A stretch of DNA of 64,000 nucleotides from Oopsacas minuta (taxonomy: Eukaryota; Animalia; Porifera). Positions 9,168-42,473 of the stretch are shown piece by piece (the first letter of the stretch is position 1; every line of letters starts with the position of its first letter). The translations under genes were made by a program, and so were the position numbers. The stretch spans positions 285,791 through 349,790 of the forward strand of contig JAKMXF010000319.1 in the NCBI GenBank assembly GCA_024704765.1, in the 5' to 3' direction. The notes below the pieces were generated by a model. The model saw only the letters and a program-made list of their open reading frames with translations. It did no database searches and was not told where the DNA came from.

Positions 9168-10439
9168 ATGGCTAACGTAGAAGTGAAAAGAAAGTTTATC
9201 GAACAAGTAAAAGAGAGTAGAAGTAAGATTAGAGACTGCTTCAAGAAGTCACATGAAGCTCTACAACTCAGAGAGAGTATCCTCCTCTCTCGTATTGATG
9301 AAATCGAGAAAGAGTATAATATCAAAAATGAAGAAATGCAGGAGTTATTGGAAGCTTTGGATAAATCAAAATCGTTAATTGCAAACACTCTGACTTCTAA
9401 TAAACTTAAAGCCACTCATCGAGGACTAGAATCACTAATAAATAAACAGTTCGAGGAACTATCAGCTGATACAGACAATAACATTGAGTTTGAATGGAAC
9501 AACCAATTCGAAGCTGACATACAACAGCTAGGGAGTATTATGCTTAACGGTCAGACTAACAAACCTCCCACTCACACCTTCCCTCCTCATGTAAAGCCTG
9601 TTGTACCTGACTACAAGGCTAAACAGCTGCCTACTGCTTACTATTGTAAGAAATCTACAGACAAGAAAGCTCCAGGAGAACTGAACTATCCCACAGGTAT
9701 AGCAATACATTACCAGACTGGAAATATTTACATAGCGGATTGTAGCAACCATCGTGTGCAAGTATTTAGCAATAATGGACACTATCTCTTCATGTTCAGT
9801 GAGAAGATGAACAACCCAATAGGTATCTGTATAACTCAGAATATGGTGTTTGTTACACAATATAGTGGTAATTGCATTAATAAGTACGAGCTAGAAGGGA
9901 AACTAATCAAGAGTGTTGGCAGGAATGGGAGTGGGGAAGCTCAGTTCTACAGTCCACGAGGTCTAGATGTCTCTGATAGAAACAACAATGTGTATGTATG
10001 TGATTCCAGTAATAAAAGAGTTCAAATCTTAACTCAAGAACTCCAGTTCCATTCCATGCTAGGAAGAGATTTGTTTAAGTATCCACTAGACGTTAAGGTT
10101 ACAACAGACAAAGTATTGGTGCTAGATAGCAGTGATCCGTGTATGTTTGTGTTTACTTCTGATCACGTTCTAACCAACAAACTGATAACTAGAGGTGATG
10201 GCAAACAAACAACCCATCCAAACTGTTTCGACATAGACAGATACTATAACATCATTATGAGTGACTACGATAATCACTGTGTGTACGTATTCAATCGGGA
10301 GGGAGAACAGATACACAAGTTTGGGAAGAAAGGTCAGGGTATCGGGGAGTTCATTAATCCCTGTGGAATAGCATTAGACAACACAGGACACATTATAGTT
10401 GTGTGTGATAAGAATACTAATTGTCTCCAATTCTTCTAA
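9168..10439 (+). CDS. Coiled-coil + six-blade NHL-repeat protein (TRIM71/Brat-like propeller, no RING/B-box), array copy 1
   Basis: Intact 423-aa ORF; N-terminal heptad-rich helix; repeats LNYPTGIAI..IYIADCSNHRVQVF, QFYSPRGLDV..VYVCD..NKRVQIL, EFINPCGIALD. Confidence 0.92.
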   Translation: MANVEVKRKFIEQVKESRSKIRDCFKKSHEALQLRESILLSRIDEIEKEYNIKNEEMQELLEALDKSKSLIANTLTSNKLKATHRGLESLINKQFEELSADTDNNIEFEWNNQFEADIQQLGSIMLNGQTNKPPTHTFPPHVKPVVPDYKAKQLPTAYYCKKSTDKKAPGELNYPTGIAIHYQTGNIYIADCSNHRVQVFSNNGHYLFMFSEKMNNPIGICITQNMVFVTQYSGNCINKYELEGKLIKSVGRNGSGEAQFYSPRGLDVSDRNNNVYVCDSSNKRVQILTQELQFHSMLGRDLFKYPLDVKVTTDKVLVLDSSDPCMFVFTSDHVLTNKLITRGDGKQTTHPNCFDIDRYYNIIMSDYDNHCVYVFNREGEQIHKFGKKGQGIGEFINPCGIALDNTGHIIVVCDKNTNCLQFF

Positions 10440-10997
10440 CTGACTGAAGAATTGTTTATAATTTGTACTAATTAGTGAAATAGTTTATTGTTTATCATTT
10501 TGTTTACTTTATTGATAATGATTATTTCCAGTTTTGTATATTTTATCTTATCTAAAGTGAAAGTTAATTGTGTTAAGGAAAAATGACATAAAAATAGGTT
10601 AAGATTGTCGGTACAGGTTCTAATTTTAGATTTTTTGGGTTAAGATATTCTTTAGTTTGGCATTGGCTATGGTTTTGGTATTTCAATTTCCTATTCATTT
10701 ACTTGTCTATCTAGTATCTAACTTGGAGAAATTGTAGCTTGCATTACTTTCAATTACACACAATTGATGGAATTATACACTCCCTCCCTATGAGGCTATG
10801 ACACGCATTTGTAATACAAATATGATACTTTGATTACTACCCCCTTTGGATTCAAGACATTATCAAATGTTTTGACAATACGTAGTATCTGATTGCTGTA
10901 GAACTTGTATAAGACGCACCCCCTTGGGAAAACCAATTTAGTTGTTACTATATGAGTTGCACTCCATTTAGTTAATTCCCTGCTCCAGCTCAATGTA

Positions 10998-11638
10998 CAG
11001 TGAAACTTTCTGACGACCCGATTGTGGATTTCAGTGTGGTATTGTGTCAAAATCACCATTTTCCCGTATATATGTAGTTCATATTATGTCTTACTATTGT
11101 TTCGTATTGCTAGTCACACTGTAGCGTTAAAATATTTCATTCTGCTACATATTGCTTATCCTGAACACCACGTCATCACTGCAAGGGCTGCCACCCAGGC
11201 TCTCCTCGACCTGGAGATATTCTTTCAGGATCAGGGGAAGCAGGTCGACGCTGAGTGGTGCGCAGTACACGCTCACGAGGTCAGAAAGGTGACAGAAAAG
11301 CTTCAGAAGCAGACAAAGATTAGCCAATTCTTCTCCCAATATTAGTGTAGGTTCTGTGTAGCACATATTTCCCCTCAGAGGCGGATTGAGTTGATTTCTT
11401 GTTCACTTACGTAGCATTTATATTGTTTTATATTCGATAGTTATTGCGAAAATACAAATTTATTGAGTTGATTTTAGTATTGATGTCCCCATTGCTTAGG
11501 GGATTTTAGTATTATTTCTATGCGAGCTGAGAGGATTAGATTTTCAGGGTTTGCCCCGATTCTCCGATTCTAGAGGTTCATTTGTATGGGAAAATATTTT
11601 CATGAGCTTCAAGTGCCCCGATTCTAGAGGTTTCTCTG
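10998..11638 (+). mobile_element. pogo/Tigger-derived MITE retaining the transposase C-terminal tail, unit 1
   Basis: TA|cagtgaaac ... gtgccccgattctagaggtttctctg|TA; encodes remnant ..KLQKQTKISQFF (PIP-box like). Confidence 0.7.
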
Positions 11639-13189
11639 TAATAAGCATTGGATATTTTCTGTGCCAACTAATAATAATATTCTTCTAACATTTCAGAATT
11701 GCTAATATTTTTTTTATTCTTATTCGTCTTTGTAACTAAGATATTCTTGTAAATCGATGTCTTTCAATCTCCATAAATGAATCTTATTCACGCTTATTCT
11801 CTGCTTTATAACTAAAAATATTTATTTTATACATCAGAGTAATTATATTATAGTTTAATATACTTTTAGTATTCAATATGGTAAATGGTTGAATACTTTT
11901 GTCCTTTATCTGTATGTATGTTTTGGCTCTGCTGTTAACACCTTTTGAGATTAAGACGTCACTACGAGTATACATGCTAAATTTGGTGTCTAGTTCTGCA
12001 TCTGTCATTTGGAATCTTTCTGATGTGTATATTTTCACACCTTTGACACCTCTGTATTTTATCCCAATCAGATTGTAGGGTGATATAATTATACATAAAT
12101 ACATAAAATTAGTTCTGGTGGAGTGTTTGTAATTTAATTAGCTCTGTAATGTATTTGTATTGATGTAGACTGTAATTGTATTGGTCAATACGTTCTATTT
12201 TATATATATATTTATACTGATTTATCATATGATTAAGCATATTTTGGCACCTTTTCCTGAACATCTCAAAATTATCCTAGAGATTAGCTTCCACTTGTTA
12301 ATAGTGGTAAACAGAGACGTAGAATTAGATTTTAGTATTTTAAATGTCTAATAAGATTAGTAAATTTCAATTTTATCTTTCTTTGATAAAATGAATATTT
12401 AATAGAATAGCAAACTTTCAATAATCCACTAAAGTTAATTTGGTGAAATTTAAGTCTGCTGCAAATTACCAACAAGGGACGTGCCTAAAGTACGTGACGT
12501 GACCTTGCAGCAACCTCCCAAACTGTGTAACTATATGTTTTATGAATAAGATAACACCACCTGTATATTCAGAACGTATGGTGTTTTGCTTGCTCCTTGT
12601 GTGATCGCTTTTTGGAACCTAAAACACAAGCATTTTGACGACCTCTGAGGTAAGTATATCGCTAGCATATCGGAAACCAATCCAGTGAAATAGGACCCCT
12701 TACTAATTTCTCACACTAGCTATAATACGCCATAGAGATGGTTCGTTGGCTATTGTGTATAGTCATCAGGCCACCCTTAACGGCCTACAACAAAGCTTTA
12801 GATACGATGTCCTTGAATCAATCACTATTGGTCAAATTTAGACACAAACGTATACTCGGAAATTCTTGGTTTGAATAGAGTATTCGGTGTTCTGACAGGT
12901 TAAATATTGGCTAATAGCTTAACATGATTTGAATGCACACCGCAGCGGTGTAAAATGAGAGTTAGTAAAGAATAGGTATTCTATTACCAGATAGCCATAT
13001 GCGATGTATTATTTGCAAATAGGTTATCGTATCCGAGGAATCGAATGGGGCAACCAAATTTCTTCTATGGCTTTTAGATTTCTGGACATGACGTCATCAC
13101 ATATTATGATGACGTCGCATTTTAAAAATTATTTAATAAAACTCATAGAAATTTCCACTTCTTAAGAAAAATCTCCTATTCTGTATATG

Positions 13190-15570
13190 TGTTACACGCA
13201 AATCGTGAAATTGCCCATTTCATTGAATAGATATTTGGTTACTCATTTCATGTAATGGTCTTTTCAAATTATTGCACACTTCATGAAATGTGCAATGCTG
13301 TTTATCTAAAGATTTTCGAGAATATGCACTTATAATTCTATGAGGAAACATGATGAAAAAACAAATTATATGAATAAGAAGTGAGAAAATATTTAGGAAA
13401 TAACTTGAGAAAACAACTTAGTCTGTCTGTTTTCAATACGTACTAATCTATGTTGTCACATGATCCTTTCCCATGACAAGCACTGTTGCATATTAGCCCT
13501 GCCTTTAAACAAGAGCAACGTTTTGTTAAACAATTGCTCTTGCAATGACATCTGCGAAATCCCTGACCACCACATATGCTCTGTACTCGAACAATTTCGC
13601 GAATCGATAATTCTTCATCTGGTATGTGTTCCGAATTCTGTCCAGTAAATTTGATAAATTCGACTTGATTTCTTGCAAGTTGGCCTCTTATTTTGCAGTT
13701 CTAGTTCCTATTTGATAACCTCTCTGATCAAATTCCCAAACAATCCCAATTATATTTGGTGGATCACCTTTGCTTCGATCAAACTGGGATACAGGCACAG
13801 CAACACTATCACCGATACGAAGAGGACGCAGGGTGCGAGTACTGCGTGCAATCATTTTTTTGGCTTGTTTTTGGATACCTTTGCAAGCTTCTATTCGTGC
13901 ACGTCTTGCCGGATGGCTATCATTTCCTCTAAAGTCCGAGAGTAGAGAATTAGAAACATTTGTATGATGCAATTCTGGATCTTTTCCTCGTATTAAATCA
14001 CTAAGAATCTCTTCAGCACTGTCATTACCTAGTGGAGTTGTGGTACATGGAAATAAATGAATACTTTCATTCGCCAGTGAAGATTCTGCCATTGGAGTAG
14101 ATGAGTTCTTTCATTGTCCAGTGAAGATTCTGCCATTGAGGGGGGTAGATGATTACTTTCAGCATCAGGATTGTCATTACCAGGTGAAACTATAGTTTCT
14201 GGATTATTAGAATTAACATCTCCGTTTTCAACTTCACAGATTTGAATTTCAAGATCTTCCTCCAATATACCTGTAAATATTTTATCGAGAAAATCTGTTG
14301 GTAGAATACTTTTCAATCCACAACGTGGTCTGTTACCAGTCATTGCTTTATACGGTTCCATTCCTGTTGCTTCATGATATGAAGTGTTCATAGACCATTG
14401 CACAAAACGGATCCCATAGCTCCATTTGGATGTACTATTATCTCGCATCCAAGCCATCAATTGAGTCTTCATGTCACCATTGCTCCGCTCGACTGATCCT
14501 TGACTTTGGGGATGACGTGGACGTCCATTCACAAGAAAAAGTTCTGGCCAAAGAGTTGAAAGTTCTTGAATCACTTGTCCCGTAAATTCACGACCATTAT
14601 CTGATTGTAAGATATTTGGTGCACCAAAGTCTCGGGAAATCAAAAGCAATTGATTTGCAACTTCTGTAGCTGTTTTTCTTTGTTGAGGACGAATAACATG
14701 GAATTTTGTTAGATATTCCATGTAATGTAATATAAATCTGAAATTACCATCTTGGATTGTTTGCATATTAACAAGATCCACCTGGCCACGTTCATTTAAG
14801 TCTTTCACTGTTAGAGGACGTATAACTACGTCAGAAGCAGTCTCTCGTCTTGCTCTCTTCTCTACACATCTTTCGCAACGTTTTATATATTCCTGGACAA
14901 GGTAACGCGGGATATTGGCAAATTTATCTTGTATCTTTTTGTGAGTTTTCTTTTCACCTCCATGGCCTGTTGCGATATGCATAGAAAATATTATATTAAT
15001 AACTTCCTCTTTTGTTGCCATGTATTTTCCATTCCGCTTAGTAACCTTAGCAACAGATCCAATAGATACTAAGGAATAAACATTCAATATATTGTAACAT
15101 TCTCTTGGAAGAGATTTTCCCGTTTTTCCACGTCTCAAGACATCGACGACGTATTTTTCATAATTCTTATCCCATAGAGTTTGATTTTCTGCCACTATCT
15201 CCTCCATATCTATGATTAATTCACCAAAAAGAAAAACGAAAGCATTGATGTTCCCGAATTGAGATCATTTATAAATGAAGAATGCTTTGATATGCACTCA
15301 TAACTACGTGTTATTAGGACAACATTATATTCAATAAGGAAGAGTGTAATCATAATTGGTGTTAAAATTGATTATTTATGAATAACATGTTACTAAGACA
15401 ACAGCATTGCACATTTCATGAAGTGTGCAATAATTTGAAAAGACCATTACATGAAATGAGTAACCAAATATCTATTCAATGAAATGGACAATACAATTGC
15501 CCATTTCACCCATTGAGCAATTTGTTTGCCCAATACATGAAATGGGCATTTTCACGATTTGCGTGTAACA
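13190..15570 (-). mobile_element. Ginger2/TDD-like DNA transposon encoding a retroviral-type integrase (KRBA2/SCAND3-like), frameshifted
   Basis: TIRs over 100 bp starting tgttacacgcaaatcgtgaaa / ending ttcacgatttgcgtgtaaca; ORF 15207-14029 with H2C2 (HIATGH..CERC) and DDE core (VDL, QSDNGREF, PQSQGSVERSN); about 45-bp duplication near 14070-14140 shifts frame; Cys-rich tail near 13480-13600. Confidence 0.85.
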
Positions 15571-15766
15571 TATATATAAACTGATTTATCATATGATTAA
15601 GCATATTTTCACATCTTTTTATGAACATCCCAATATTATCCTAGAGATTAGCTTCCACTTGTTGAATAGTGGTAAACAGAGACGTAGAATTAGATTTTTA
15701 GTATTTTAAATGTCTAACAAGATTAGTAAATTTCAATTTTATCTTTCTTTGATAAAATGATTATTT

Positions 15767-16452
15767 GGACCATATACAATACTATACTTGTTTATCATCC
15801 CCGCCCGACCCATTTCATCTCCCTCCTCGGCAATTTTTATTTTAATACATATCTTTATTTAATACTTATATTCGCAAATGAGCATCTTCGAAACAAGCTA
15901 ATTATTTAACACTAGCGCCCTTCGCTTGCTAGGCCGCTGAGCAGTGTGCCTAATCAGGTAATTTTTCGAAGATCCAAAAAGGTGGCAATGGCATCATAAT
16001 TTCGTCAGGCATGAATTTTCGTCCAAGACTCAAACCTGTCCGAGTCAGGCCCAAATACCCCTCCCTGTATGGCAAAAATCAGCCCTGGGGTGTGCACTAC
16101 ATTTTTATTATTATTATTTTTTATCATTATTCTTATATAGAATTATAGATTAATCGCATTTGAATAATATTGATTATTGTAGTATAACCACAATAAGCAT
16201 AACGTAACAAAACGTTGGTAATTCTTAATAATTTGGTTAAACACAGTGTATTTTACTGATTGTTTTTTCTGCGTATAATTATAAGCTATCTCACCTACCC
16301 TACTTGAGAGTTCCAGTTTTTTCAATTTTACTCTTCTAAATTTCATAGATACATATTAGTGAAATTATGCTAAGCAAAAATTAAAAATAAGATGCCGCCC
16401 CTATTTCGCAGAAAAAAAGGGATGAGAAACAAGTAATTTGTTTTATATGGCC
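15767..16452. mobile_element. Non-autonomous element at a TTAA site (Kolobok-like termini GG..CC)
   Basis: Imperfect about 35-bp TIRs ggaccatatacaatactatacttgtttatcatccc / gggatgagaaacaagtaatttgttttatatggcc; the empty site reads tatTTAAtagaatagc; second copy 47111-47795; relative in the BIG1 intron 56447-56754. Confidence 0.6.
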
Positions 16453-16685
16453 TTAGTAGAATAGCAAACTTTCAATAATCCACTAAAGTTAATTTGGTGA
16501 AATTAAGCCTGAACAGACGGAGATTTTAGATTTTATTAGAAATATCTCTTTTGTGTAAATTTGATATTCCTTACAGGAAGATGGTTATTATATATTAGGC
16601 ATTATTTGTATGTTTATACATTACTCAAATTACAACTAAATATTTGTAGATATTATTCAGAATTATCAAATTGAACAGACAAGAA

Positions 16686-17951
16686 ATGGCTAGCGTAGAA
16701 GTGAAAAGAAAGTTTATCGAACAATTAAAAGAGAGTAGAAGTAAGATTAGAGACTGCTTCAAGAAGTCACATGAAGCTCTACAATTCAGAGAGAGTATCC
16801 TCCTCTCTCGTATTGATGAAATCGAGAAAGAGTATAATATCAAAAATGAGGAAATGCTGGAATTATTGGAAGCTTTGAATAAATCAAAATCGTTAATTAC
16901 AAACACTCTGACTTCTAATAAACTTAAAGCTACTCATCGAGGAATAGAAATACTAATAAATAAACAGATCGAGGAACTATCAGTCGATACAGACAGAAGT
17001 ATTGAGTTTGAATGGAACAACCAATTCGAAGCTGACATTGAACAGCTAGGGAGTATTATGCTTAACGGTCAGACTAACAAACCTCCCACTCACACCTTCC
17101 CTCCTCAAGTGAAGCCTGTTGTACCTGACTACAAGGCTAAACAGCTGCCTACTGCTTACTGCTGTAATAAATCTACAGACAAGAAAGCTCCAGGAGGACT
17201 GAATTGTCCCACAGGTATAGCAATACATTACCAAACTGGAAATATTTACATAGTGGATTGTAGCAACCATCGTGTGGAAGTATTTAGCAATAATGGACAC
17301 TATCTCTTCATGTTCAGTGAGACGATGAACCGACCATTTGGTATCTGTATATCTCAGAATAAAGTGTTTGTTACACAATGGAGTGGTAATTGCATTAATA
17401 AGTACGAGCTAGAAGGGAAACTAATCAAGAGTGTTGGTAGTCAAGGGAATGGAGAAGCTCAGTTCAACAATCCATGCGGTCTGGATGTCTCTGATAGAAG
17501 TAGCAATGTGTATGTTTGTGATTGTTATAATGACAGAGTTCAAATCTTAACTCAAGAACTCAAGTTCCATTCCATGCTAGGAATAGACTTGTTTAAGGCT
17601 CCACGTGACGTTAAGGTTGCAAGAGATAGGGTATTGGTGCTAGATGCGAGTGATCTGTGTATGTTTGTGTTCAATTCAGAACATGTTCTAACTAACAGAC
17701 TGATAACTAGAGGTGGTGGCAAACAAACAATCAATCCATTATGTTTCGACATAGACAGAGACTATAACATCATCATGAGTGACTACGATAATCACTGTGT
17801 GTACGTATTTAATCAGGAGGGAGAACAGATACACAAGTTTGGGAAGGAAGGTCAGGGTATCGGGGAGTTCTATCGTCCCTGGGGAATAGCATTAGACAAC
17901 ACAGGACACATAGTTGTGTGTCAGAAGAATAATTGTCTCCAATTCTTCTAA
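16686..17951 (+). CDS. Coiled-coil + NHL-repeat protein, array copy 2 (421 aa from the ATG)
   Basis: Intact paralogue; ATG at 16686 aligns with the other copies; lacks two codons in the last blade (HIVV, KNNC). Confidence 0.92.
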   Translation: MASVEVKRKFIEQLKESRSKIRDCFKKSHEALQFRESILLSRIDEIEKEYNIKNEEMLELLEALNKSKSLITNTLTSNKLKATHRGIEILINKQIEELSVDTDRSIEFEWNNQFEADIEQLGSIMLNGQTNKPPTHTFPPQVKPVVPDYKAKQLPTAYCCNKSTDKKAPGGLNCPTGIAIHYQTGNIYIVDCSNHRVEVFSNNGHYLFMFSETMNRPFGICISQNKVFVTQWSGNCINKYELEGKLIKSVGSQGNGEAQFNNPCGLDVSDRSSNVYVCDCYNDRVQILTQELKFHSMLGIDLFKAPRDVKVARDRVLVLDASDLCMFVFNSEHVLTNRLITRGGGKQTINPLCFDIDRDYNIIMSDYDNHCVYVFNQEGEQIHKFGKEGQGIGEFYRPWGIALDNTGHIVVCQKNNCLQFF

Positions 17952-18920: not shown

Positions 18921-18924
18921 ACGC

Positions 18925-21000
18925 GTAATGTTAGAGGGTACATTCAATCATTAGGACGTAACCCCTTTATTATTCATTTATATACTGAAGACCAAATTAA
19001 AATATTAAAATGTTTTAAAGATAAAAGCATAATTCTTCACTTAGATGCTACTGACTCAATCATTCGAAAGATTGAACCTTCTCAGCACAAAGTATTTTAA
19101 TGTGCTCTCACAGTACAACATCCAACTTGTTCTACCAGTCCCGTACCTCTGGCAGAGATGATCAGTTCTGGTCATACTAGCACTGAGATTAGTTATTTTC
19201 TACACGAATGGTATCTTGATGCAAAGAAAGTATTAGATTATAATATTAAGATAGGACATATTGAGATAGTTTTCAGCTGGGCGTTAATTCATAGTGTGTG
19301 TAATGCTTTTCTTAAATGTGACATCGATACATATCTTGATAAATGTTGGAATAGAGTGGATACAAATTCTGTCAATCAGGAACTAGAATTAAAATTGATT
19401 CTCCATTTATGTTCTGCCCATATAAGGCATGGCATTGGCTTTCACATTAATAGGAAATTTAAGTTAAATAAAGAAGTGAGAAAGTTGTTTTCGTATTCCT
19501 TTGGATATCTGGTGCGTTTTACTAATATTACTCAAATAAGTTATGTGTTTACTTCCTTGTGTTATGTGTTTAAGAGTAAATATATGAATGAACATGTATT
19601 AACCGATATTAAAACATTAGAGTATTATATTAGTGACAGTTATTCTGATTTAGATGATACAAATGAAAGTTTATACGATGAGGGTAGTGATAATGATCCC
19701 ATCGATATTAAGGATGGTAAGACCCTAAGAGACAGATCTCCCTTTGGCAAAACATTTTGCATATATAAGTAAACAATGTGAAAATGCTATCAACAATGAT
19801 CACACCAAAGCATTTGATTCGAATCCTTGCTATTATCCTCGCCTTATAGAATATATTTTAACTTACTACTTACCTATTCTGCCATTATTGAGTGGTATTA
19901 TATTAGGCCCCCACAGTGTTTCAGTTGGAAATAATTATTCGTATTATAGTAACGCCATTGTAGAGAACTGTATGGGTATAGTTAAATTAGATATTTTGAA
20001 TTCGAAATCAAATTTGAGGCCTGGAGATTCATTAGAGTATTATATCCCGGTATAACTAGTAGAATTACCGCTTTCAATTTTGCTTTTCATCCCAGAGCTA
20101 ATAAAATTTTAAAGGTCGTAAGCGAATAAGAGATATTTCAGGAGAAAAATATAGTGAAGAATGCTCCAGGAGAAAGAAACAGCATTGTGGCTATTTGAAG
20201 TCGAAAACATATGAATTTCCTCAATTGAATAGAGATAAACTGTAGTAAAAGATAAATTAATTCCTATTAAGCGTCAGAAGTTGTCTACGTTACATATGAT
20301 TTGCAAATCATCAGAAATTAATACTCCGTCAATTATTACTGATGAAGAATTGGTAGAGTCAAGTATAATACGATATATTATACCAAGCCTTCGTCCACCA
20401 CACATTGAATGGCAAATCGCTACCTGTAAGAAATGGAAACTACATTATAGTAATCAGATTGTCTATTCTTTAGATAATTTAATTGATAATGGTGAAGGAT
20501 TATATGTATATAATCCCGGAATAACAGAAACAACATCAGGTGATGGAAACTGTTATTTTCTACTATTTCTTATCCGACAACAGGTAGTAAAACCTATATC
20601 ATAAAGAATTACGGGCAATTATCGTTGAAAGCATGTTTGGTAAATTAAGTGCGAGTTGTAATGCGTTTTTTGCGTACTAATTATGTTTACTCAAGGGAAT
20701 TTTAGGAATATTCAGGATTGGGTAAATAAAATGGGGATGAATAAGGTTGGGAAATGGGCTACTGACTTAAAGGTATTTGCAGCTTCGTTGTTATTTAATA
20801 TAGATATTTGGGTGTTTTTGGGCCCTACTGGAACTCGTTGGGCTGGGTTTTCGGGTAATGGATCAAGTTTTGATCAATTATTAAAGGAGCCAACTTCAAA
20901 TGGTTTATATATTCAGAATTTATGTAATCATTACCAGCCCGTACTATCTCTAATTTATTATTTAAAGCAACCCAATCGTTGGTTTCAATTTATGGCAGCG
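18925..21000 (+). pseudogene. Decayed Mutator-class (NOF-FB-like) transposase with a C-terminal OTU-like protease domain
   Basis: GYIQSLGRNPFIIHLY, LHLDATDS, PVPLAEMISSGH, IVFSWALIHSV, SNAIVENCMGIVKLDIL; later SGDGNCYF, WATDLKVFAASLLF, NLCNHYQPV; many stops and frameshifts; 5' truncated. Confidence 0.6.
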
Positions 21001-22360
21001 AAAATTATATATTTACCAACAAGATTATTAGTGAAACAATAAATATTTTGTATAAATGAATCTTGAATATTTTGTGAAATCTCATCTAAATATGTAAAAT
21101 TGATTGCGTCAAAATCACAAATGTAAGTATATACGTATATGTATCGACAGTTGGATTATATGGAACAATTTTATGACCTTTTCTCTAACCAAGGTACGTT
21201 TCTGAATCGGCTGCTAAGATAACACTCGTCCCACTGTATAACTATTTATGGACAACAATTTGATGTATTTGAAAATGTTCACCTCCAATTGGCGTCTTTT
21301 CATGGAGCGGATATTTCCTGTAATATGGTACTTCACCATAGTTCAAGAAATCAGCTATTTCATGTTCTATAGAAAGAAGAACAAGGCTTTCAAGCCTTTC
21401 TTGACGCATAGTTGATTTTAGTTATGTTTTATCATCTTTAACTTACTGAGGCTTATTTCTACACCAGCAGTAGCTACTGGAAGAGTGATAGAGATTGTTA
21501 AGAGTATAGACTATTTGGGAATGCTTTTCTAAAGAATGAATCGTACATTACTTCTTATCGGTAGAATCAGCAGAATATTGCCAAGAATCATCTACAATCG
21601 AACTTGTCTATACCGGCCACTAAAGGGACTTTGCCAAAGAGGCCGATATAGACAAGTTTAGCGCCAGTAAAGGACTCTGAGTTGTGTATTTTGTCTGCTC
21701 TGAGGTTGAGTCTGGTGCAATTTGAACTCAAATACACGTAATCATAGGCGTACGGGCAGTTGTATTCTTGGAGGAGGGGAGGGCTGCGAAATGAGATTGC
21801 TCGAATTTCGACATACTATAATTGTCCGATATTAACGATACATTTTGCCCGAAATCAATACTAGATTTGTCTTTTTCCAGTAATAGCAGATTAATTAACT
21901 AATCTAATTTGTGATACCGGTTAACATAAAGGAAAGAAATATACATCAAATGAATTTTGGACCTGAAGAATAAAGAATAATAAATAATTCAATAATTTGA
22001 TAAGATAATCCATTATTCTTTAACCTGAATTAGTTAACTTGGTCTTAAAGTTAAAACTGTACAATAGTATATTACAGAAAATAGGAATGTACTATAGTAC
22101 AGTTAAGCTAAATATAAGTTATCTCTTAATAGAATAGCAAACTTTAAATAATCCACTAAAGTTAATTTGGTGAAATTAAGCCTGAACAGACGGAGATTTT
22201 AGATTTTATTAGAAATATCTCTTTTGTGTAAATTTGATATTCCTTACAGGAAGATGGTTATTATATATTAGGCATTATTTGTATGTTTATACATTTAATC
22301 AAATTACAACTAAATATTTGTAGATATTATTCAGAATTATCAAATTGAACAGACAAAGAA

Positions 22361-23632
22361 ATGGCTAGCGTAGAAGTGAAAAGAAACTTTATCGAACAAG
22401 TAAAAGAGAGTAGAAGTAAGATTAGAGACTGCTTCAAGAAGTCACATGAAGCTCTACAACTCAGAGAGAGTATCCTCCTCTCTCGTATTGATGAAATCGA
22501 GAAAGAGTATAATATCAAAAATGAAGAAATGCAGGAGTTATTGGAAGCTTTGAATAAATCAAAATCGTTAATTACAGACACTCTGACTTCTAATAAACTT
22601 AAAGCCACTCATCGAGGACTAGAATCACTAATAAATAAACAACTCGAGGAACTATCAGCTGATACAGACAATAGCATTGAGTTTGAATGGAACAACCAAT
22701 TCGAAGCTGACATAGAACAGCTAGGGAGTATTATGCTTAACAGTGAGACTAACCTATCTCTCAACCCCACCTTCCCTCCTCAAGTAAAGCCTGTTGTACC
22801 TAACTACAAGGCTAAACAGCTACCTACTGCTTACTACTGTAAGAAATCTACAGACAAGAAAGCTCCAGGAGGACTGAATTATCCTAGAGGTATAGCAATA
22901 CATTACCAGACTGGAAAAATTTACATAGCGGATTTTGGCAACAATCGTGTGCAAGTATTTAGCAGTAACGGAGACTATTTCTTCATGTTCAGTGGGAAGA
23001 TGAACAACCCATGGGGTATCTGTATATCTCAGAATAAAGTGTTTGTTACACAATATAGTGGTAATTGTATTAATAAGTACGAGCTAGAAGGGAAACTAAT
23101 CAAGAGTGTTGGTAGTAAAGGGAATGGAGGAGTTCAGTTCTACTATCCACAGGGGATAGATGTCTCTGATAGAAATAGCAATGTGTATGTATGTGATTGT
23201 TATAATGACAGAGTTCAAATCTTAACTCAAGAACTCAAGTTCCATTCCATGCTAGGAATAGGCTTGTTTAAGTATCCACGTGATGTTAAGGTTACAAGAG
23301 ACAGAGTATTAGTGTTAGATGGGAGTGATCCGTGTGTGTTTGTGTTCACTTCAGATCACTTTCTAACCAACAAACTGATAACTAGAGGTGGTGGCAAACA
23401 AACAAACATTCCATACTGTTTTGACATAGACAGATACTATAACATCATTATGAGTGACTACTATAATCACTGTGTATACGTATTCAATCAGGAGGGAGAA
23501 CAGATACACAAGTTTGGGAAGCAAGGTCAGGGTATCGGGGAGTTCTATTGTCCATATGGAATAGCATTAGACAACACAGGACACATTATAGTTGTGTGTG
23601 AGAAGAATACTAATTGTCTCCAATTTTTCTAA
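22361..23632 (+). CDS. Coiled-coil + NHL-repeat protein, array copy 3
   Basis: Intact 423-aa paralogue. Confidence 0.92.
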   Translation: MASVEVKRNFIEQVKESRSKIRDCFKKSHEALQLRESILLSRIDEIEKEYNIKNEEMQELLEALNKSKSLITDTLTSNKLKATHRGLESLINKQLEELSADTDNSIEFEWNNQFEADIEQLGSIMLNSETNLSLNPTFPPQVKPVVPNYKAKQLPTAYYCKKSTDKKAPGGLNYPRGIAIHYQTGKIYIADFGNNRVQVFSSNGDYFFMFSGKMNNPWGICISQNKVFVTQYSGNCINKYELEGKLIKSVGSKGNGGVQFYYPQGIDVSDRNSNVYVCDCYNDRVQILTQELKFHSMLGIGLFKYPRDVKVTRDRVLVLDGSDPCVFVFTSDHFLTNKLITRGGGKQTNIPYCFDIDRYYNIIMSDYYNHCVYVFNQEGEQIHKFGKQGQGIGEFYCPYGIALDNTGHIIVVCEKNTNCLQFF

Positions 23633-23833
23633 CTGACTGAAGAATTCTTTATAATTTGTACTAATTAGCGAAATATTTTATTGTTCATTATTTTGTTTAC
23701 TTTATTGATAATGATTATTTCCAGTTTTGTAGGGTTTATCTTATCTAAACCGATAGTTAATTGTGTTAAGGAAAAATGACATAAAAATAGGTTAAGACTT
23801 GATAATTCATATTTTATTTATTTATATTACAGT

Positions 23834-26552: not shown

Positions 26553-26651
26553 CATGTTACAGTCAATGTGTAAAATCAGTCAATTTACAAATTGACTGAA
26601 ATTTCCAGTCAATTTGTAAATTGACTGATTTTACACATTGACTGTAACATG
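26553..26651. repeat. 99-bp palindrome (perfect 46-bp arms, 7-nt loop) in a (TA)n tract; probable MITE
   Basis: catgttacagtcaatgtgtaaaatcagtcaatttacaaattgactg aaatttc cagtcaatttgtaaattgactgattttacacattgactgtaacatg. Confidence 0.9.
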
Positions 26652-26982
26652 TATATATACTGATTTATCATATGATTAACAATATTTTCACACCTTTTTC
26701 TGAACATCTCAAAATTATCCTAGAGATTAGCTTCCACTTGTTAAATAGTGGTAAACAGAGACGTAGAATCAGATTTTAGCATTTTAAATGTCTAACAAGA
26801 TTAGTAAATTTCAATTTTATCTTTCTTTGATAAAATGAATATTTAATAGAATAGCAAACTTTAAATAATCCACTAAAGTTAATTTGGTGAAATTAAGCCT
26901 GAACAGACGGAGATTTTAGATTTTATTAGAAATATCTCTTTTGTGTAAATTTGATATTCCTTACAGGAAGATCGTTATTATA

Positions 26983-28282: not shown

Positions 28283-28379
28283 TATATTAGGCATTATTTG
28301 TATGTTTATACATTTACTCAAATTACAACTAAATATTTGTAGATATTATTCAGAATTATCAAATTGAACAGACAAAGAA

Positions 28380-29651
28380 ATGGCTAGCGTAGAAGTGAAA
28401 AGAAAGTTTATCGAACAAGTAAAAGAGAGTAGAAGTAAGATTAGAGACTGCTTCAAGAAGTCACATGAAGCTCTACAACTCAGAGAGGGTATCCTCCTCT
28501 CTCGTATTGATGAAATCGAGAAAGAGTATAATATCAAAAATGAGGAAATGCAAGAGTTATTGGAAGCTTTGAATAAATCAAAATCGTTAATTACAGACAC
28601 TCTGACTTCTAATAAACTTAAAGCCACTCATCGAGGAATAGAATCACTACTAAATAAACAAATCGAAGAACTATCAGCTGATACAGACAGTAGTTTTGAG
28701 TTTGAATGGAACAGTCATTTCGAAGCTGACATAGAACAGCTAGGGAGTATTATGCTTAACGGTCAGACTAACAAACCTCCCACTCACACCTTCCCTCCTC
28801 AAGTGAAGCCTGTTGTACCTGACTACAAGGCTAAACACCTTCCTACTGCTTACTGCTGTAAGAAATCTACAGACAAGAAAGCTCCAGGAGAGCTGCACGG
28901 TTCCAGAGGTATAGCAATACATTACCTAACTGGAAATATTTACATAGCGGATTGTGACAACAATCGTGTACAAGTATTTAGCAGTAACGGAGATTATCTC
29001 TTCATGTTCAGTGAGGAGATGAACCTACCATATGGTATCGGTATAACTCAGAATAAAGTGTTTGTTACACAATTCTATGGTTATTGCATTAATAAGTACG
29101 AGCTAGAAGGGAAACTAATCAAGAGTGTTGGTAGTCAAGGGAATGGAGAAGCTCAGTTCAACAATCCATGCGGTCTGGATGTCTCTGATAGAAGTAGCAA
29201 TGTGTATGTTTGTGATATTAGGAATAATAGAGTTCAAATCTTAACTCAAGAACTCAAGTTCCATTCCATGCTAGGAATAGACTTGTTTAAGGCTCCACTT
29301 GACATTAAGGTTACAAGAGACAGAGTATTGGTGCTAGATAGAAGTGATCCGTGTATGCTTGTGTTCAATTCCTATCACGTTCAAATCAACAGGCTGATAA
29401 CTTGCGGGGATGGCAAACAAACAAACAATCCAGACTTTTTCGACATAGATAGAGATTATAATATCATTATGAGTGACTGCTATGATCACTGTGTGTACGT
29501 ATTCAATCAGGAGGGAGAACAGATACACAAGTTTGGGGAGAAAGGTCACGGTATCGGGGAGTTCTATTTTCCATATGGAATAGTACTAGACAACACAGGA
29601 CACATTATAGTTGTGTGTCAGAAGAATACTAATTGTCTCCAATTCTTCTAA
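28380..29651 (+). CDS. Coiled-coil + NHL-repeat protein, array copy 4
   Basis: Intact 423-aa paralogue. Confidence 0.92.
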   Translation: MASVEVKRKFIEQVKESRSKIRDCFKKSHEALQLREGILLSRIDEIEKEYNIKNEEMQELLEALNKSKSLITDTLTSNKLKATHRGIESLLNKQIEELSADTDSSFEFEWNSHFEADIEQLGSIMLNGQTNKPPTHTFPPQVKPVVPDYKAKHLPTAYCCKKSTDKKAPGELHGSRGIAIHYLTGNIYIADCDNNRVQVFSSNGDYLFMFSEEMNLPYGIGITQNKVFVTQFYGYCINKYELEGKLIKSVGSQGNGEAQFNNPCGLDVSDRSSNVYVCDIRNNRVQILTQELKFHSMLGIDLFKAPLDIKVTRDRVLVLDRSDPCMLVFNSYHVQINRLITCGDGKQTNNPDFFDIDRDYNIIMSDCYDHCVYVFNQEGEQIHKFGEKGHGIGEFYFPYGIVLDNTGHIIVVCQKNTNCLQFF

Positions 29652-31960: not shown

Positions 31961-31974
31961 ACACAGGTAAGAAT

Positions 31975-34045: not shown

Positions 34046-34055
34046 TTTATATATA

Positions 34056-34971: not shown

Positions 34972-35396
34972 TATATATACTGATTTATCATTTGATTAAG
35001 CATATTTTCACACCTTTTACTGAACATCTCAAAATTATCCTAGAGATTAGCTTCCACTTGTTAAATAGTGGTAAACAGAGACGTAGAATTAGATTTTAGT
35101 ATTTTGAATGTCTAACAAGATTAGTAAATTTCAATTTTATCTTTCTTTGATAAAATGAATATTTAATAGAATAGCAAACTTTAAATAATCCACTAAAGTT
35201 AATTTGGTGAAATTAAGTCTGAACAGACGGAGATTTTAGATTTTATTAGAAATATCTCTTTTGTGTAAATTTGATATTCCTTACAGGAAGATGGTTATTA
35301 TATATTAGGCATTATTTGTATGTTTATACGTTACTCAAATTACAACTAAATATTTGTAGATATTATTCAGAATTATCAAATTGAACAGATAAAGAA

Positions 35397-36662
35397 ATGG
35401 CTAGCGTAGAAGTGAAAAGAAAATTTATCGAACAAGTAAAAGAGAGTAGAAGTAAGATTAGAGACTGCTTCAAGAAGTCACATGAAGCTCTACAACTCAG
35501 AGAGAGTATCCTCCTCTCTCGTATTGATGAAATCGAGAAAGAATATAATATCAAAAATGAGGAAATGCAGGAGTTATTGGAAGCTTTGAATAAATCAAAA
35601 TCGTTAATTACAGACACTCTGACTTCTAATAAACTTAAAGCCACTCATCGAGGGATAGAATCACTAATCAATAACCAGATCGAGGAACTATCAGCTGATA
35701 CAGACAGTAGTATTTTGTTTGAATGGAACAATCAATTCGAAGCTGACATAGGACAGCTAGGGGCTATTACGCTTAACGGTCAGACTGACAACCCTCACTC
35801 TCGCACCTTTCCTCCTCAAGTGAAGCCTGTTGTACCTGACTACAAGGCTAAACAGCTGCCTACTGCTTACTGGTGTAAGAAATCTACAGACAAGAAAGCT
35901 CCAGGAGAACTTAATTGTCCCAGTGGTATAGCAATACATTACCAAACTGGAAATATTTACATAGCGGATTGTGGCAACCATCGTATACAAGTATTTAGCA
36001 GCAACGGAGACTATCTCTTCATGTTCAGTGAGAAGATGAACCTTCCAGTAGGTATCTGTATATCTCAGAATAACGTGTTTGTTACACAATGGAGTTATCA
36101 TTGCATTAATACGTACGAGCTAGAAGGGAAATTCATCAAGAGTGTTGGTAGTCAGGGGAATGGAGAAGTTCAGTTCAACTTCCCACGGGGTCTAGATGTC
36201 TCTGATAGAGATAGCAATGTGTATGTATGTGATTGTCATAATGACCGAGTTCAAATCTTAACTCAAGAACTCAATTTCCATTCCATGCTAGGAATAGACT
36301 TGTTTGTGTATCCACGTGATGTTAAGGTTACAAGAGATAGAGTATTGGTGCTAGATGCGAGTGATCTATGTATGTTTGTGTTCAATTCAGAACATGTTCT
36401 AACTAACAGACTGATAACTAGAGGTGGTGGCAAACAAACAATCAATCCATTATGTTTCGACATAGACAGAGATTATAACATCATTATGAGTGACTATGAT
36501 AGTCACTGTCTGTACGTATTTAATCAGGAGGGAGAACAGATACACAAGTTTGGGAAGGAAGGTCAGGGTATCGGGGAGTTCTATCGTCCCTGGGGAATAG
36601 CATTAGACAACACAGGACACATAGTTGTGTGTCAGAAGAATAATTGTCTCCAATTCTTCTAA
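35397..36662 (+). CDS. Coiled-coil + NHL-repeat protein, array copy 5 (421 aa)
   Basis: Intact paralogue; same two-codon deletions as copy 2. Confidence 0.92.
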   Translation: MASVEVKRKFIEQVKESRSKIRDCFKKSHEALQLRESILLSRIDEIEKEYNIKNEEMQELLEALNKSKSLITDTLTSNKLKATHRGIESLINNQIEELSADTDSSILFEWNNQFEADIGQLGAITLNGQTDNPHSRTFPPQVKPVVPDYKAKQLPTAYWCKKSTDKKAPGELNCPSGIAIHYQTGNIYIADCGNHRIQVFSSNGDYLFMFSEKMNLPVGICISQNNVFVTQWSYHCINTYELEGKFIKSVGSQGNGEVQFNFPRGLDVSDRDSNVYVCDCHNDRVQILTQELNFHSMLGIDLFVYPRDVKVTRDRVLVLDASDLCMFVFNSEHVLTNRLITRGGGKQTINPLCFDIDRDYNIIMSDYDSHCLYVFNQEGEQIHKFGKEGQGIGEFYRPWGIALDNTGHIVVCQKNNCLQFF

Positions 36663-37216
36663 CTGCCTGAAGAATTCTTTATAATTTGTACTAATTAGTG
36701 AAATAGTTTATTGTTTATAATTTTGTTTACTTTATTGATAATGATTATTTCCAGTTTTGTATAGTTTATCTTATCTAAAGTGAAAGTTAATTGTGTTGAG
36801 GAAAAATGACATAAAAATAGGTTAAGATTGTCGGTACAGGTTCTAATTTTAGATTTTTTGGCTTAAGATATTCTTTAGTTTGGCATTGGCTATGGTTTTG
36901 GTATTTCAATTTCCTATTCATTTACTTGTCTATCTAGTATATAACTAGGAGAAATTGTAGCTTGCATTACTTTCAATTACACACAATTCATGGAATTATA
37001 CACTCCCTCCCTATGAGGCTATGTCATGCATTTGTAATAGAAGTATGATACTTTGATCACTACCCTCTCTGGATTCAAGACATTATCAAATGTTTTGACA
37101 ATACGAACTATCTGATTACTGTAGAACTCGTATAAGACCCCTTAGGAAAAACCAATTTTGTTGTTACTCTCCGTGTTCTACTCCATTTAGTTATTTTCCT
37201 GCTCCAGTTCAAGATA

Positions 37217-37924
37217 CAGTGAAACCTCTGGAATCGAGGCATGTGTGATACTGTGAAAATTTCTGACGCCCCGATTGTGGAAATTCCCCGATTGTGGATT
37301 TCTGTGTGGTATTGTGTCAAAATCACCATTTTCCGTATTTATGTAGTTCATATTATGTCATACTATTGTTTCGTATTGCTAGTCACACCTTAACGTTATA
37401 ACATTTCATTCAGCTCCATATTGGTTATCCTGAACACCATGTCATCACTGCAAAGGCTGCCACCCAGGCTCTCCTCGACCTGGAGATATACTTTCAGGAT
37501 CTGGGGAAGCAGGTCGACGCTGAGTGGTGCGCAGTACACGCTTACGAGGTCAGAAAGGTGGCAGAAAAGCATCAGAAGCAGACAAAGATTAGTCAATTCT
37601 TCTCCCAATGTTGGTGTATGTTCTGTGTAGCACATATTTACCCACAGAGGCGGATTGAATTGATTTCTTATACACTTACGTAGCATTTATATTGTATTAT
37701 ATTCCAAAGTTATTTCGCAAATACAAATTTATTGAGTTGATATCAGTATTGATGCCCCGATTGCGGAGGGGATTTTAGTATTATTTCTATGCGAGCTGAA
37801 AGAATTAGATTTTCAGAGTTTGCTCCGATTCCCCGATTGTCGCTCTTTCCCCGGTTCCAGAGGTTCATTTGTATGGGAAATTATTTCGCGAATTTCTCGT
37901 GCCGTGATTTCAGAGGTTGTACTG
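37217..37924 (+). mobile_element. pogo-derived MITE, unit 5
   Basis: TA|cagtgaaacctctggaatcgaggca .. gatttcagaggttgtactg|TA. Confidence 0.7.
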
Positions 37925-37934
37925 TATCTATATT

Positions 37935-40900: not shown

Positions 40901-40967
40901 GTACTATAGTATAGTACAGAAAATAGGAATGTACTATAGTAGAGTTAAGCTAAATATAAGTTATCTC
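37935..40967 (+). mobile_element. FAR1-like MULE (Mutator) transposon, decayed, with about 75-bp TIRs
   Basis: WRKY/GCM1-type finger (VCQRSG..KCGC..HLEHTGH), MULE core (FYDTSHGTIKYG, ILTDGD, LLYTFHLSQN, STQRAEAVH), SWIM finger; TIR agcttaactatactattgtacattcctattttctgtac mirrored at about 40895-40967. Confidence 0.78.
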
Positions 40968-41201
40968 TTAATAGAATATCAAACTTTAAATAATCCACTA
41001 AAGTTAATTTGGTGAAATTCAGCCTGAACAGACGGTGATTTTAGATTTTATTAGAAATATCTCTTTTGTGTAAATTTGATATTCCTTACAGGAAGATGGT
41101 TATTATATATTAGGCATTATTTGTATGTTTATACATTACTCAAATTACAACTAAATATTTGTGGATATTATTCAGAATTATCAAATTGAACAGACAAAGA
41201 A

Positions 41202-42473
41202 ATGGCTAGCGTAGAAGTGAAGAGAAAGTTTATCGAACAAGTAAAAGAGAGTAGAAGTAAGATTAGAGACTGCTTCAAGAAGTCACATGAAGCTCTACAA
41301 CTCAGAGAGAGTATCCTCCTCTCTCGTATTGATGAAATCGAGAAAGAGTATAATATCAAAAATGAAGAAATGCAGGAGTTATTGGAAGCTTTGGATAAAT
41401 CAAAATCATTAATTACAGACACTCTGACTTCTAATAAACTTAAAGCCACTCATCGAGGAATAGAAATACTAATAAATAAACAGATCGAGGAACTATCAGT
41501 CGATACAGACAGAAGTATTGAGTTTGAATGGAACAGTCATTTCGAAGCTGACATAGAACAGCTAGGGAGTATTATGCTTAACGGTCAGACTAACAAACCT
41601 CCCACTCACACCTTCCCTCCTCAAGTGAAGCCTGTTGTACCTGACTACAAGGCTAAACACCTTCCTACTGCTTACTGCTGTAAGAAATCTACAGACAAGA
41701 AAGCTCCAGGAGAGCTGCACGGTTCCAGAGGTATAGCAATACATTACCAGACTGGAAATATTTACATAGCGGATTGTGACAACAATCGTGTACAAGTATT
41801 TAGCAGTAACGGAGACTATCTCTTCATGTTCAGTGAGAAGATGTACTACCCATGGGGAATCTGTATATCTCAGAATAAATTGTTTGTTACACAATTCTAT
41901 GCTAATTGCATTAATAAGTACGAGCTAGAAGGGAAACTAATCAAGAGTGTTGGTAGTGAAGGGAATGAAGAAGCTCAGTTCAATTATCCACTGGGTCTAG
42001 ATGTCTCTGATAGAGATAGCAATGTGTATGTATGTGATTTCTATAATCATAGAGTTCAAATCTTAACTCAAGAACTCAAGTTCCATTCCATGCTAGGAAT
42101 AGACTTGTTTGTGTATCCACGTGATGTTAAGGTTACAAGAGACAGAGTATTGGTGCTAGATAACAGTGATCCGTGTATGTTTGTGTTCAATTCAGATCAC
42201 GTTCTAACCAACAGACTGATAACTAGAGGTGTTGGCAAACAAACAAACGATCCAAACTGTTTCGACATAGACAGAGACCATAACATCATTATGAGTGACT
42301 ACTATAACCACTGTGTGTGCGTATTTAGTCAGGAAGGAGAACAGATTCACAAGTTTGGGAAGGAAGGTCAGGGTATCGGGGAGTTCAGTTACCCATGGGG
42401 AATAGTACTAGACAACACAGGACACATTGTTGTTGTGTGTGAGAAGAATACTAATTGTCTCCAATTCTTCTAA
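41202..42473 (+). CDS. Coiled-coil + NHL-repeat protein, array copy 6
   Basis: Intact 423-aa paralogue. Confidence 0.92.
   Translation: MASVEVKRKFIEQVKESRSKIRDCFKKSHEALQLRESILLSRIDEIEKEYNIKNEEMQELLEALDKSKSLITDTLTSNKLKATHRGIEILINKQIEELSVDTDRSIEFEWNSHFEADIEQLGSIMLNGQTNKPPTHTFPPQVKPVVPDYKAKHLPTAYCCKKSTDKKAPGELHGSRGIAIHYQTGNIYIADCDNNRVQVFSSNGDYLFMFSEKMYYPWGICISQNKLFVTQFYANCINKYELEGKLIKSVGSEGNEEAQFNYPLGLDVSDRDSNVYVCDFYNHRVQILTQELKFHSMLGIDLFVYPRDVKVTRDRVLVLDNSDPCMFVFNSDHVLTNRLITRGVGKQTNDPNCFDIDRDHNIIMSDYYNHCVCVFSQEGEQIHKFGKEGQGIGEFSYPWGIVLDNTGHIVVVCEKNTNCLQFF

Follow-up and report, generated by a model that had tools for sequence, protein, structure and literature searches.

What keeps neighbouring genes almost identical along most of their length while changing them at the same few positions in each repeat of one domain? 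The question is raised by a 64-kb stretch of the genome of the glass sponge Oopsacas minuta (contig JAKMXF010000319.1 of assembly GCA_024704765.1; the whole stretch is referred to as the window), in which six intact, intronless open reading frames (ORFs) of 421–423 codons lie on the plus strand at a spacing of 5.7–7.5 kb. Each of them encodes a coiled coil followed by an NHL β-propeller, and the six proteins are 82–86% identical in the alignment. All six had been located correctly in an initial annotation made from the letters of the sequence. The answer favoured here, with a probability of roughly 70%, is a germline recognition repertoire in which a constant NHL scaffold carries a top face under diversifying selection, tracts are exchanged between paralogues and each paralogue has a ligand of its own. 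The genes are positioned as follows:

9168 to 10439, plus strand: copy 1, 423 aa, intact ORF (Pfam NHL, E = 6e-26; DUF5128 six-bladed propeller)
16686 to 17951, plus strand: copy 2, 421 aa, counted from the conserved ATG at 16686 (the mechanical ORF runs from a TTG at 16671)
22361 to 23632, plus strand: copy 3, 423 aa, the reference for residue numbers and for the AlphaFold2 model
28380 to 29651, plus strand: copy 4, 423 aa (ORF, alignment and Pfam)
35397 to 36662, plus strand: copy 5, 421 aa (ORF and alignment)
41202 to 42473, plus strand: copy 6, 423 aa (ORF and alignment)

The differences between the copies clustered at four positions per blade, namely the two residues flanking the blade proline and two residues after strand B, the latter following a conserved Asp, Gln or Cys at the end of the strand. 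In copy 3, where the codon of residue p starts at position 22361 + 3(p − 1), the hypervariable residues were 174, 176, 192, 193, 216, 218, 232, 233, (253), 261, 262, 264, 280, 281, 304, 305, 307, 321, 350, 352, 367, 368, 397, 399 and 414. The same pattern was observed in a family alignment of 117 members from two species, 94 of which came from metagenome-type assemblies of the second species in the European Nucleotide Archive (ENA; a single locus was retrieved from this set, ERZ25071281). The entropy of the NHL columns was near zero except for isolated spikes of 2–3.4 bits, which stood in the same register in all six blades and coincided with the residues listed above other than 176, 253 and 304. 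Between 7 and 17 different amino acids occurred at each of these spikes. The mean pairwise identity was 23% at the 24 variable sites and 86% at the other 229 NHL positions, and 115 of the 117 members had a distinct variable-site signature. No signature of O. minuta was more than 46% identical to any signature of the second species; specificities turn over quickly.

The composition of the variable sites was strongly biased, with Tyr enriched 3.9-fold and Arg 3.1-fold, Cys and His also enriched, Trp found at these sites only, and Pro, Ile and Val depleted. The mean net charge contributed by them was +2.9, with a range from −4 to +7. The initial annotation had quoted series of tripeptides for the six copies (YPT/CPT/YPR/GSR/CPS/GSR and others, among them those beginning with DCS, QYS and DSS) and had described many changes as whole-codon swaps; every quoted series was found in the alignment, and the codon series ata/ttt/tgg/tat/gta/tgg proved to be exactly site 218. 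Among codon pairs differing in the encoded amino acid, two or three nucleotides were changed in 60% of the pairs at the variable sites and in 27% elsewhere in the NHL domain, as the swaps had led one to expect.

Two codon alignments, one of the six window copies and one of 15 intact copies from O. minuta, were used to measure substitution. The variable sites were defined on the 94 ENA sequences alone to avoid circularity, which resulted in 18 sites of at least 2 bits. At these cross-validated sites the nonsynonymous distance (dN) was 0.76–0.84 in O. minuta, whereas the rest of the NHL domain had a synonymous distance (dS) of 0.165 and a dN/dS ratio (ω) of 0.41. The ratio of dN at the variable sites to the domain dS was 4.5 for the six window copies (bootstrap 3.1–6.9) and 5.2 for the fifteen copies (bootstrap 3.9–6.9). 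Two neutral yardsticks were lower still than the domain dS: the four-fold degenerate distance in the array was 0.029 in the coiled coil (codons 1–130) and 0.082 in the propeller (codons 171–423), and the distance in the 3' untranslated region (UTR) was 0.039.

Site models were run with our own code (GY94 likelihood, F3x4 codon frequencies, scaled branch lengths) on four alignment segments, each with a fixed tree built without the variable codons. The comparison of models M2a and M1a gave a 2ΔlnL (twice the difference in log likelihood) of 394, with ω2 = 9.5 for p2 = 5.5% of codons. A posterior above 0.9 was obtained for 21 sites. None lay outside the NHL domain, and 20 belonged to the blade register. 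In controls run with the same code, 2ΔlnL was 2.9 for the coiled coil and linker, 1.2 for the NHL domain deprived of 25 variable codons and 382 for the domain with these codons. Since the controls without them stayed near zero, the signal comes from the variable codons and not from recombination or implementation. Residue 253 (23117–23119), in the D–A loop of blade 3, reached an M2a posterior of 0.996 while standing outside the four-per-blade register.

To place the variable sites on the fold, copy 3 was modelled with AlphaFold2 from a 55-sequence alignment and strands were assigned with DSSP. The mean pLDDT (predicted local distance difference test) was 87.6, with values above 90 in the propeller. 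The model contained 24 strands in six blades, with an N-terminal strand (157–162) closing blade 6. Membership in the NHL family was indicated by Pfam (PF01436, E = 6e-26, 89.5 bits against a cut-off of 20; PF17170, E = 5e-15). A Foldseek comparison with NHL crystal structures gave template modelling (TM) scores, normalised by target, of 0.78–0.88 with E values of 1e-33 to 1e-27, the closest solved folds being the NHL domains of TRIM2, TRIM3, Thin, TRIM71/LIN-41 (RNA complexes 6FQ3 and 8J72) and Brat. The parts of copy 3 are:

22388 to 22660, plus strand: helical hairpin, TRIM-like coiled coil, residues 10–100 (DSSP on the AlphaFold2 model)
22829 to 23629, plus strand: six-bladed NHL β-propeller, residues 157–423 (Pfam, AlphaFold2 and fold search)
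22880 to 23602, plus strand: span with the hypervariable codons (entropy, dN, M2a and TRIM71 register)

In the topology of the model, the variable positions of each blade stood where strand A begins and directly behind the end of strand B. A four-stranded meander of this kind has its D–A and B–C loops on one side, the conventional top face, near the central channel. With structural classes set from the AlphaFold2 strand topology and scored as dN over the background dS, the top D–A loops reached 0.9 and the top B–C loops 1.6–1.9, compared with 0.33–0.42 for the bottom loops and 0.36–0.38 for the strands. The model thus places the variable sites on one face, the top one.

The RNA stem-loop bound by LIN-41 contacts residues that line a basic cavity on the 'upper' surface and are, numbered as in the human protein, R608, R625, R655, K672, D673, Y702, R720, R751, R796 and R814 (Kumari et al. 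2018, PMC5908797). The register of these contacts was compared with that of the sponge family by aligning the sponge blade-5/6 unit to human TRIM71 (7QRX, chain offset +589) with phmmer. The unit aligned to all six TRIM71 blades, and the ten contact residues had the expected identity. All ten contacts fell at the position before (P−1) or after (P+1) the blade proline or at the first (D+1) or second (D+2) position after the conserved aspartate, precisely the four repeat positions at which the sponge proteins show hypervariability. The proposal of the initial annotation, diversifying selection on the NHL top face, was borne out on three sides: by dN/dS above 1 (4.5–5.2 in the pairwise ratio, about 9.5 in M2a), by the location of the sites, which were not scattered and occupied the start of strand A and the B–C loop of every blade while the bottom loops were as conserved as the strands, and by the TRIM71 alignment, in which its premise of an RNA-binding top face held for 10 of 10 contacts.

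The scaffold showed traces of exchange between paralogues. Trees were built for four segments with the variable codons left out and compared by approximately unbiased (AU) tests. The segment trees rejected each other's topology almost always (AU p < 0.002 for the coiled-coil and blade 1–4 segments), although the blade 5–6 segment did not reject the coiled-coil tree (AU p = 0.097). The six window copies formed a clade for the coiled coil (98% support) and not for the propeller segments. In 6 of the 15 pairs of copies, runs of identity were longer than the permutation expectation (p ≤ 0.0005). Copies 2 and 4 were identical over codons 236–277, copies 2 and 5 over codons 326–359 (permutation p < 0.0005 for both) and copies 4 and 6 over codons 107–176 with 43 polymorphic sites (p < 0.0005). 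Such tracts were blade-sized and carried the variable residues along. In the array, the propeller exceeded the coiled coil 2.8-fold in four-fold distance, which fits an import of propeller segments from more distant paralogues outside the array. The near-identity of the coiled coils, noted by the initial annotation, holds within the window but not genome-wide, where the coiled coils are more diverged.

The unit of duplication common to the copies comprised 40–450 nt of 5' sequence, the coding sequence (CDS) and 0.17–1.2 kb of 3' sequence, the remainder of each spacer being unrelated or transposon-derived. The 3' flank of 165 nt had a mean pairwise p-distance of 0.039 among the six copies. Downstream of copy 3, the similarity extended to a locus elsewhere in the assembly, L004, in which a paralogue is followed by an eIF4E gene: positions 22182–24176 matched L004:9821-11813 with 91% identity and 26087–26355 matched L004:11850-12118 with 89%. 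The match was split by an insertion of roughly 1.9 kb with a minus-strand FLYWCH ORF. Because copy 3 is accompanied by DNA 91% identical to that of L004, movement between dispersed sites takes place at the DNA level. The flanking features are:

23633 to 23797, plus strand: conserved 3' flank, probable 3'UTR, common to all six copies (alignment)
23834 to 26355, plus strand: 3' flank of copy 3 with DNA of the eIF4E locus (match to L004)
25137 to 25820, minus strand: FLYWCH ORF in the insertion in the 3' flank of copy 3 (FLYWCH Pfam match)

Coiled-coil lineages shared across species, combined with an NHL scaffold that groups by species, would be the classical proof of concerted evolution, but this pattern was not supported. 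In protein trees of the 117 members only 2 changes of species label were counted in both domains; the two ENA copies nested in the nucleotide coiled-coil tree represented one clade, and the pattern depended on rooting.

The array belongs to a large family that expanded recently. A total of 782 proteins matched copy 3 at E ≤ 1e-10. The best 120 of these were 68–100% identical to copy 3, nearly all of 414–424 aa, and consisted of 23 proteins from O. minuta (the six window copies included) and 97 from ENA assemblies. The four-fold synonymous distance between O. minuta and ENA copies was 0.18–0.26. The other O. minuta paralogues, retrieved from the same assembly as the window, were dispersed over many contigs among housekeeping genes. 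More distant full-length subfamilies with the same architecture were detected at 27–39% identity. A second coiled-coil and NHL subfamily with 27% identity was present at L001:972-2114 and L003:701-1843; both genes adjoin C-type-lectin adhesion-GPCR genes, and a member of the main family is also found there. Copies with truncated 5' ends and one full-length copy with an internal stop were noticed at L006:4700-5599, L007:1917-2819, L002:19516-20526 and L006:17532-18800. The truncated copies begin at about residue 87–123 and thus retain the linker and propeller alone; they may be genes for NHL-only proteins, pseudogenes or donors in gene conversion.

At the N-terminus, a helix of copy 3 (10–74) folds back on a second helix (78–100) in the AlphaFold2 model, and 9 residues precede the coiled coil. 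Pfam detected no RING or other zinc finger, no zf-B_box and no filamin domain in any of the six copies. In each of them an in-frame TGA precedes the ATG by five codons, and as a consequence no upstream coding exon in frame can add a RING or B-box. The 117 compared members, of 410–430 aa, had the same N-terminus. In comparison with Swiss-Prot AlphaFold models, residues 349 (coiled coil) to 868 of TRIM71 aligned to sponge residues 6–423, and a cnidarian RING–B-box–NHL cluster of the ESM Atlas superposed with a TM score of 0.74 over 375 residues. As judged from these structure comparisons, the coiled coil lies directly N-terminal to the C-terminal domain, as in TRIM proteins. A search of the atlas with residues 1–155 gave scores up to 0.86 that serve as leads only, with many molluscan B-box proteins and one TRIM_CC cluster among them. 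The genes are best described as RING-less and B-box-less relatives of TRIM-NHL genes, and not as TRIMs or E3 ligases despite their database names, because the defining tripartite motif is missing. A Pfam match of the N-terminus to RPW8 was not taken as a sign of a cell-death domain, as its scores were below threshold (E = 0.003–0.007, 16–18 bits against a cut-off of 30.4), and no NACHT or NB-ARC match was found in Pfam for a protein that is too short to hold a NACHT domain. No signal peptide or hydrophobic N-terminus was seen on direct reading of the sequence MASVEVKRKFIEQ, for which reason the sponge NHL proteins are predicted to be cytoplasmic. Residues 4–8 of copy 3 (22370–22384), a region of low model confidence, were also variable across the family (1.8–2.6 bits).

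Taken together, the scaffold, the coiled coil and the UTRs are kept near constant by purifying selection and paralogue exchange, whereas the central cavity of the top face is encircled by about 24 residues, four from each blade, on which positive selection acts to diversify them. The same residues are moved from one paralogue to another by blade-sized tracts of gene conversion. Through selection and reshuffling, nearly every member has a unique surface rich in Tyr, Arg, Trp and Cys. As in diversified recognition receptors, this is a multigene family in which ω exceeds 1 only in the binding-surface register and in which trees, tracts and four-fold distances indicate exchange between paralogues. 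Each paralogue would bind a different ligand through the top face, the face used for RNA by TRIM71/LIN-41 and Brat, and the coiled coil would dimerise the protein or link it to a downstream partner. The family may then constitute a recognition repertoire that is encoded in the germline and engaged in conflict with rapidly evolving targets, for which viral or transposon RNA or proteins, symbiont molecules and non-self cytoplasm are candidates. The homology and the enrichment of Arg and Tyr make RNA a plausible class of ligand, but many members may bind something else, as the wide charge range suggests. Whether the family represents an unrecognised class of animal intracellular receptors, RING-less NHL propellers with antibody-like faces rich in Tyr, Arg and Trp that positive selection and cassette-like gene conversion have diversified and that serve cytoplasmic immunity or self/non-self discrimination in a syncytium, is a narrower proposal that can be put forward only tentatively, at somewhat less than even odds.

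Several points weigh against the recognition repertoire. The putative binding function is read from the evolutionary pattern and homology, and the assignment to one face from strand topology and the TRIM71 register. The local ω at the variable codons, calculated by the Nei–Gojobori method (NG86), was 1.5. This value is depressed because path-averaged 'synonymous' steps in codons hit several times inflate the local dS (0.49–0.57 compared with 0.165 domain-wide), and the domain-wide dS was consequently taken as the denominator and checked against the four-fold sites and the 3'UTR. The site models were run with our own code, and recombination inside a segment might raise ω artificially, against which speak both the controls and the pairwise estimate, which needs no tree. 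Transcription of the NHL genes is suggested by reads of which the library type (RNA or DNA) was not recorded. Three or four runs of one sample contained the sequence, in short contigs. The depth over the CDS was 10–1000 times that of the flanks, with hundreds to thousands over the CDS of copy 3 against tens in its flanks, values to be read for a multicopy family. In runs X2 and X3 some intergenic bins had zero coverage. A contig of run X1 matched copy 3 exactly across residues 164–217, including four variable codons.

Of the alternatives, the one that survives best differs from the recognition repertoire only in the target, the mechanism being the same. The family could serve to regulate endogenous transcripts or to silence endogenous transposons through RNA binding specific for sequence or shape; it would then be a conflict or regulatory repertoire comparable to the plant restorer-like PPR genes or the KRAB zinc fingers and not one of immunity or allorecognition. 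The coincidence of the variable sites with the RNA-contact register of TRIM71 agrees with this possibility, as do the mean charge of +2.9 and the preference for Arg and Tyr, which are the most enriched residues and typical of RNA binding. One paralogue (L004:10001-15745) stands directly upstream of eIF4E and an Argonaute/Piwi gene, a neighbourhood that may be coincidental in a compact genome. However, with site charges from −4 to +7, many members are without a basic face, and this reading is considered unlikely.

A targeted mutational process that diversifies the variable codons without selection on the protein, such as a diversity generator, error-prone repair at tract ends or templated patching, would account for the raised NG86 dS at these codons (0.49–0.57 vs 0.165). 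Gene conversion is active in the family, and the truncated NHL-only copies elsewhere could act as donors. Silent diversity close to the variable codons is not elevated, however. In invariant codons, the silent diversity was 0.10 next to the variable codons, 0.03 one codon further out and 0.085–0.093 at a greater distance, and the Pro codon enclosed by two variable codons had no silent variation in 3 of the 6 blades. Precision to a single codon would be needed at 24 places. The amino-acid spectrum was non-random, with Tyr, Arg and Trp raised and Pro, Ile and Val lowered, and the genes were accompanied by no reverse transcriptase or template repeat in Pfam searches, the sole integrase being a degraded fragment. 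Hypervariability that is precise to the codon and biased in its amino-acid outcome points to selection on the protein, and targeted mutation is a very improbable explanation.

Neutral drift in exposed loops of young duplicates is still less credible. The whole-gene pairwise ω of 0.46–0.66, high for a conserved gene, and the youth of the paralogues (four-fold distance 0.03–0.15) would be in line with relaxed constraint, but drift cannot give a dN 4.5–5 times dS or an ω2 of 9.5, the equally exposed bottom loops are as conserved as the strands, and the same four positions per blade vary in both species, so that this reading is effectively refuted.

The bacterial-style names of several paralogues (PknD, PEP-CTERM, cell surface protein) and the high scores of giant bacterial multi-NHL proteins in a 50%-identity library might evoke genes of a symbiont, in which NHL 'eukaryotic-like proteins' are common among sponge associates, or else mis-assembled chimeras of paralogues, but this can practically be dismissed. 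The closest solved and predicted structures, coiled coil included, are animal TRIM-NHL proteins, and the family is also present in a separate, independent assembly from another species. The six ORFs are intact with common UTRs, and several variable codons of copy 3 are covered by read contigs that match it exactly. The GC content of the window is uniform (0.32–0.40), and the genes stand on a 365-kb contig between eukaryotic housekeeping genes, those in the window being OATP, Rer1, a HIBADH-like dehydrogenase, a Vps26-like gene and BIG1/2 Sec7. The window is sponge nuclear DNA and not that of a symbiont.

Among known systems, the best match in sequence and fold is the TRIM-NHL group (TRIM71/LIN-41, TRIM2, TRIM3, Thin/Abba, Brat, Mei-P26 and NHL-1/2), in which a coiled coil that superposes on the sponge model precedes a six-bladed NHL propeller. 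These proteins are longer (650–1150 aa compared with 423 aa) and have a RING, B-box or filamin domain that is absent from the sponge proteins; E3 ligase activity is not expected of the latter, as they lack RING and B-box. Unlike TRIM-NHL genes, the sponge genes have no introns and make up a multigene family with hundreds of members. Whereas the binding face is hypervariable in the sponge proteins, its residues are conserved from one LIN-41 orthologue to another.

A close conceptual analogue was found in the HNWD genes (het-d, het-e and het-r) of the fungus Podospora anserina, NACHT–WD40 genes of non-self recognition. In each of their WD40 repeats, diversifying selection acts on four positions at the interaction surface of the propeller, and exchange within and between paralogues homogenises the remaining positions (Paoletti et al. 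2007, PMC1805685). In both cases the recognition module is a β-propeller, four top-surface positions per repeat diversify and the scaffold is homogenised; both organisms are syncytial and the sponge proteins, like the fungal ones, are expected in the cytoplasm. The syncytial parallel, by analogy, is intriguing. The repeat differs (WD40 or NHL), as do the kingdoms. The fungal proteins carry NACHT and HET effector domains and a variable number of repeats, whereas the sponge genes have six blades and a coiled coil only, with blades that are not near-identical to each other within one protein, and fungal repeat-induced point mutation (RIP) has no counterpart in the sponge system.

Two further families share parts of the pattern. 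TRIM5alpha, the fish finTRIM genes and other antiviral TRIM-B30.2 families are lineage-specific tandem expansions in which positive selection targets loops at the surface of the C-terminal recognition domain and dimerisation occurs through a coiled coil. The sponge genes resemble them as a TRIM-type expansion with selected C-terminal loops; in the antiviral families the domain is B30.2/SPRY instead of NHL, and the RING and B-box are kept and needed for signalling and restriction. The restorer-of-fertility-like pentatricopeptide repeat (PPR) genes of plants are clustered paralogues of a repeat protein with an RNA target, in which the specificity residues are under diversifying selection and recombination shuffles the repeats. 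They differ in being α-solenoids targeted to organelles, with a known conflict with mitochondrial genes.

A literature search for NHL proteins in glass sponges and for TRIM-NHL proteins of Porifera returned no description of this family, in agreement with the novelty claimed at the outset, the HNWD genes being the nearest concept. To our knowledge, the NHL propeller has not been described as a hypervariable recognition scaffold in any organism. The evolutionary principle is known from other scaffolds, and what is new is the use of NHL, the RING-less architecture and the early-branching animal host. Sponges are devoid of adaptive immunity, and their known expanded receptor families are NLRs and SRCR proteins. 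The tissue of glass sponges is largely one syncytium, and little is known of how these animals tell self or symbiont from parasite. If the family is indeed a new class of intracellular receptors, it would be an animal counterpart of the HNWD heterokaryon-incompatibility propellers, directed against viruses, transposons or symbionts or used for self/non-self discrimination in syncytial tissue. The pattern of variation is in any case convergent with that of fungal WD40 non-self receptors. The roughly 24 codons with ω of about 5–9 in an 86%-identical scaffold constitute a map of specificity-determining residues and make the system directly testable. The NHL fold, from which the designed 'Pizza' propellers derive, could also be an evolvable natural scaffold for binders.

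Apart from the six copies, one trace of a different NHL subfamily was detected by tblastn upstream of the array:

5701 to 6048, plus strand: fragment of a different NHL subfamily

It is 37% identical to residues 233–347 of copy 3 and lies between the OATP and Rer1 genes; it is probably a decayed copy, the ORF at 5743–6069 being without a Pfam match. A 204-aa ORF without a Pfam match is located between copies 2 and 3 (19158–19772), and the degraded integrase ORF occupies 14029–15207 on the minus strand. Copies 2 to 6 are bracketed by a direct repeat of 942 nt with 98% identity (15570–16511 and 46914–47854), of which shorter copies are present at 12206–12458, 26649–26901 and 34972–35221. This repeat is probably a young transposon or its long terminal repeat.

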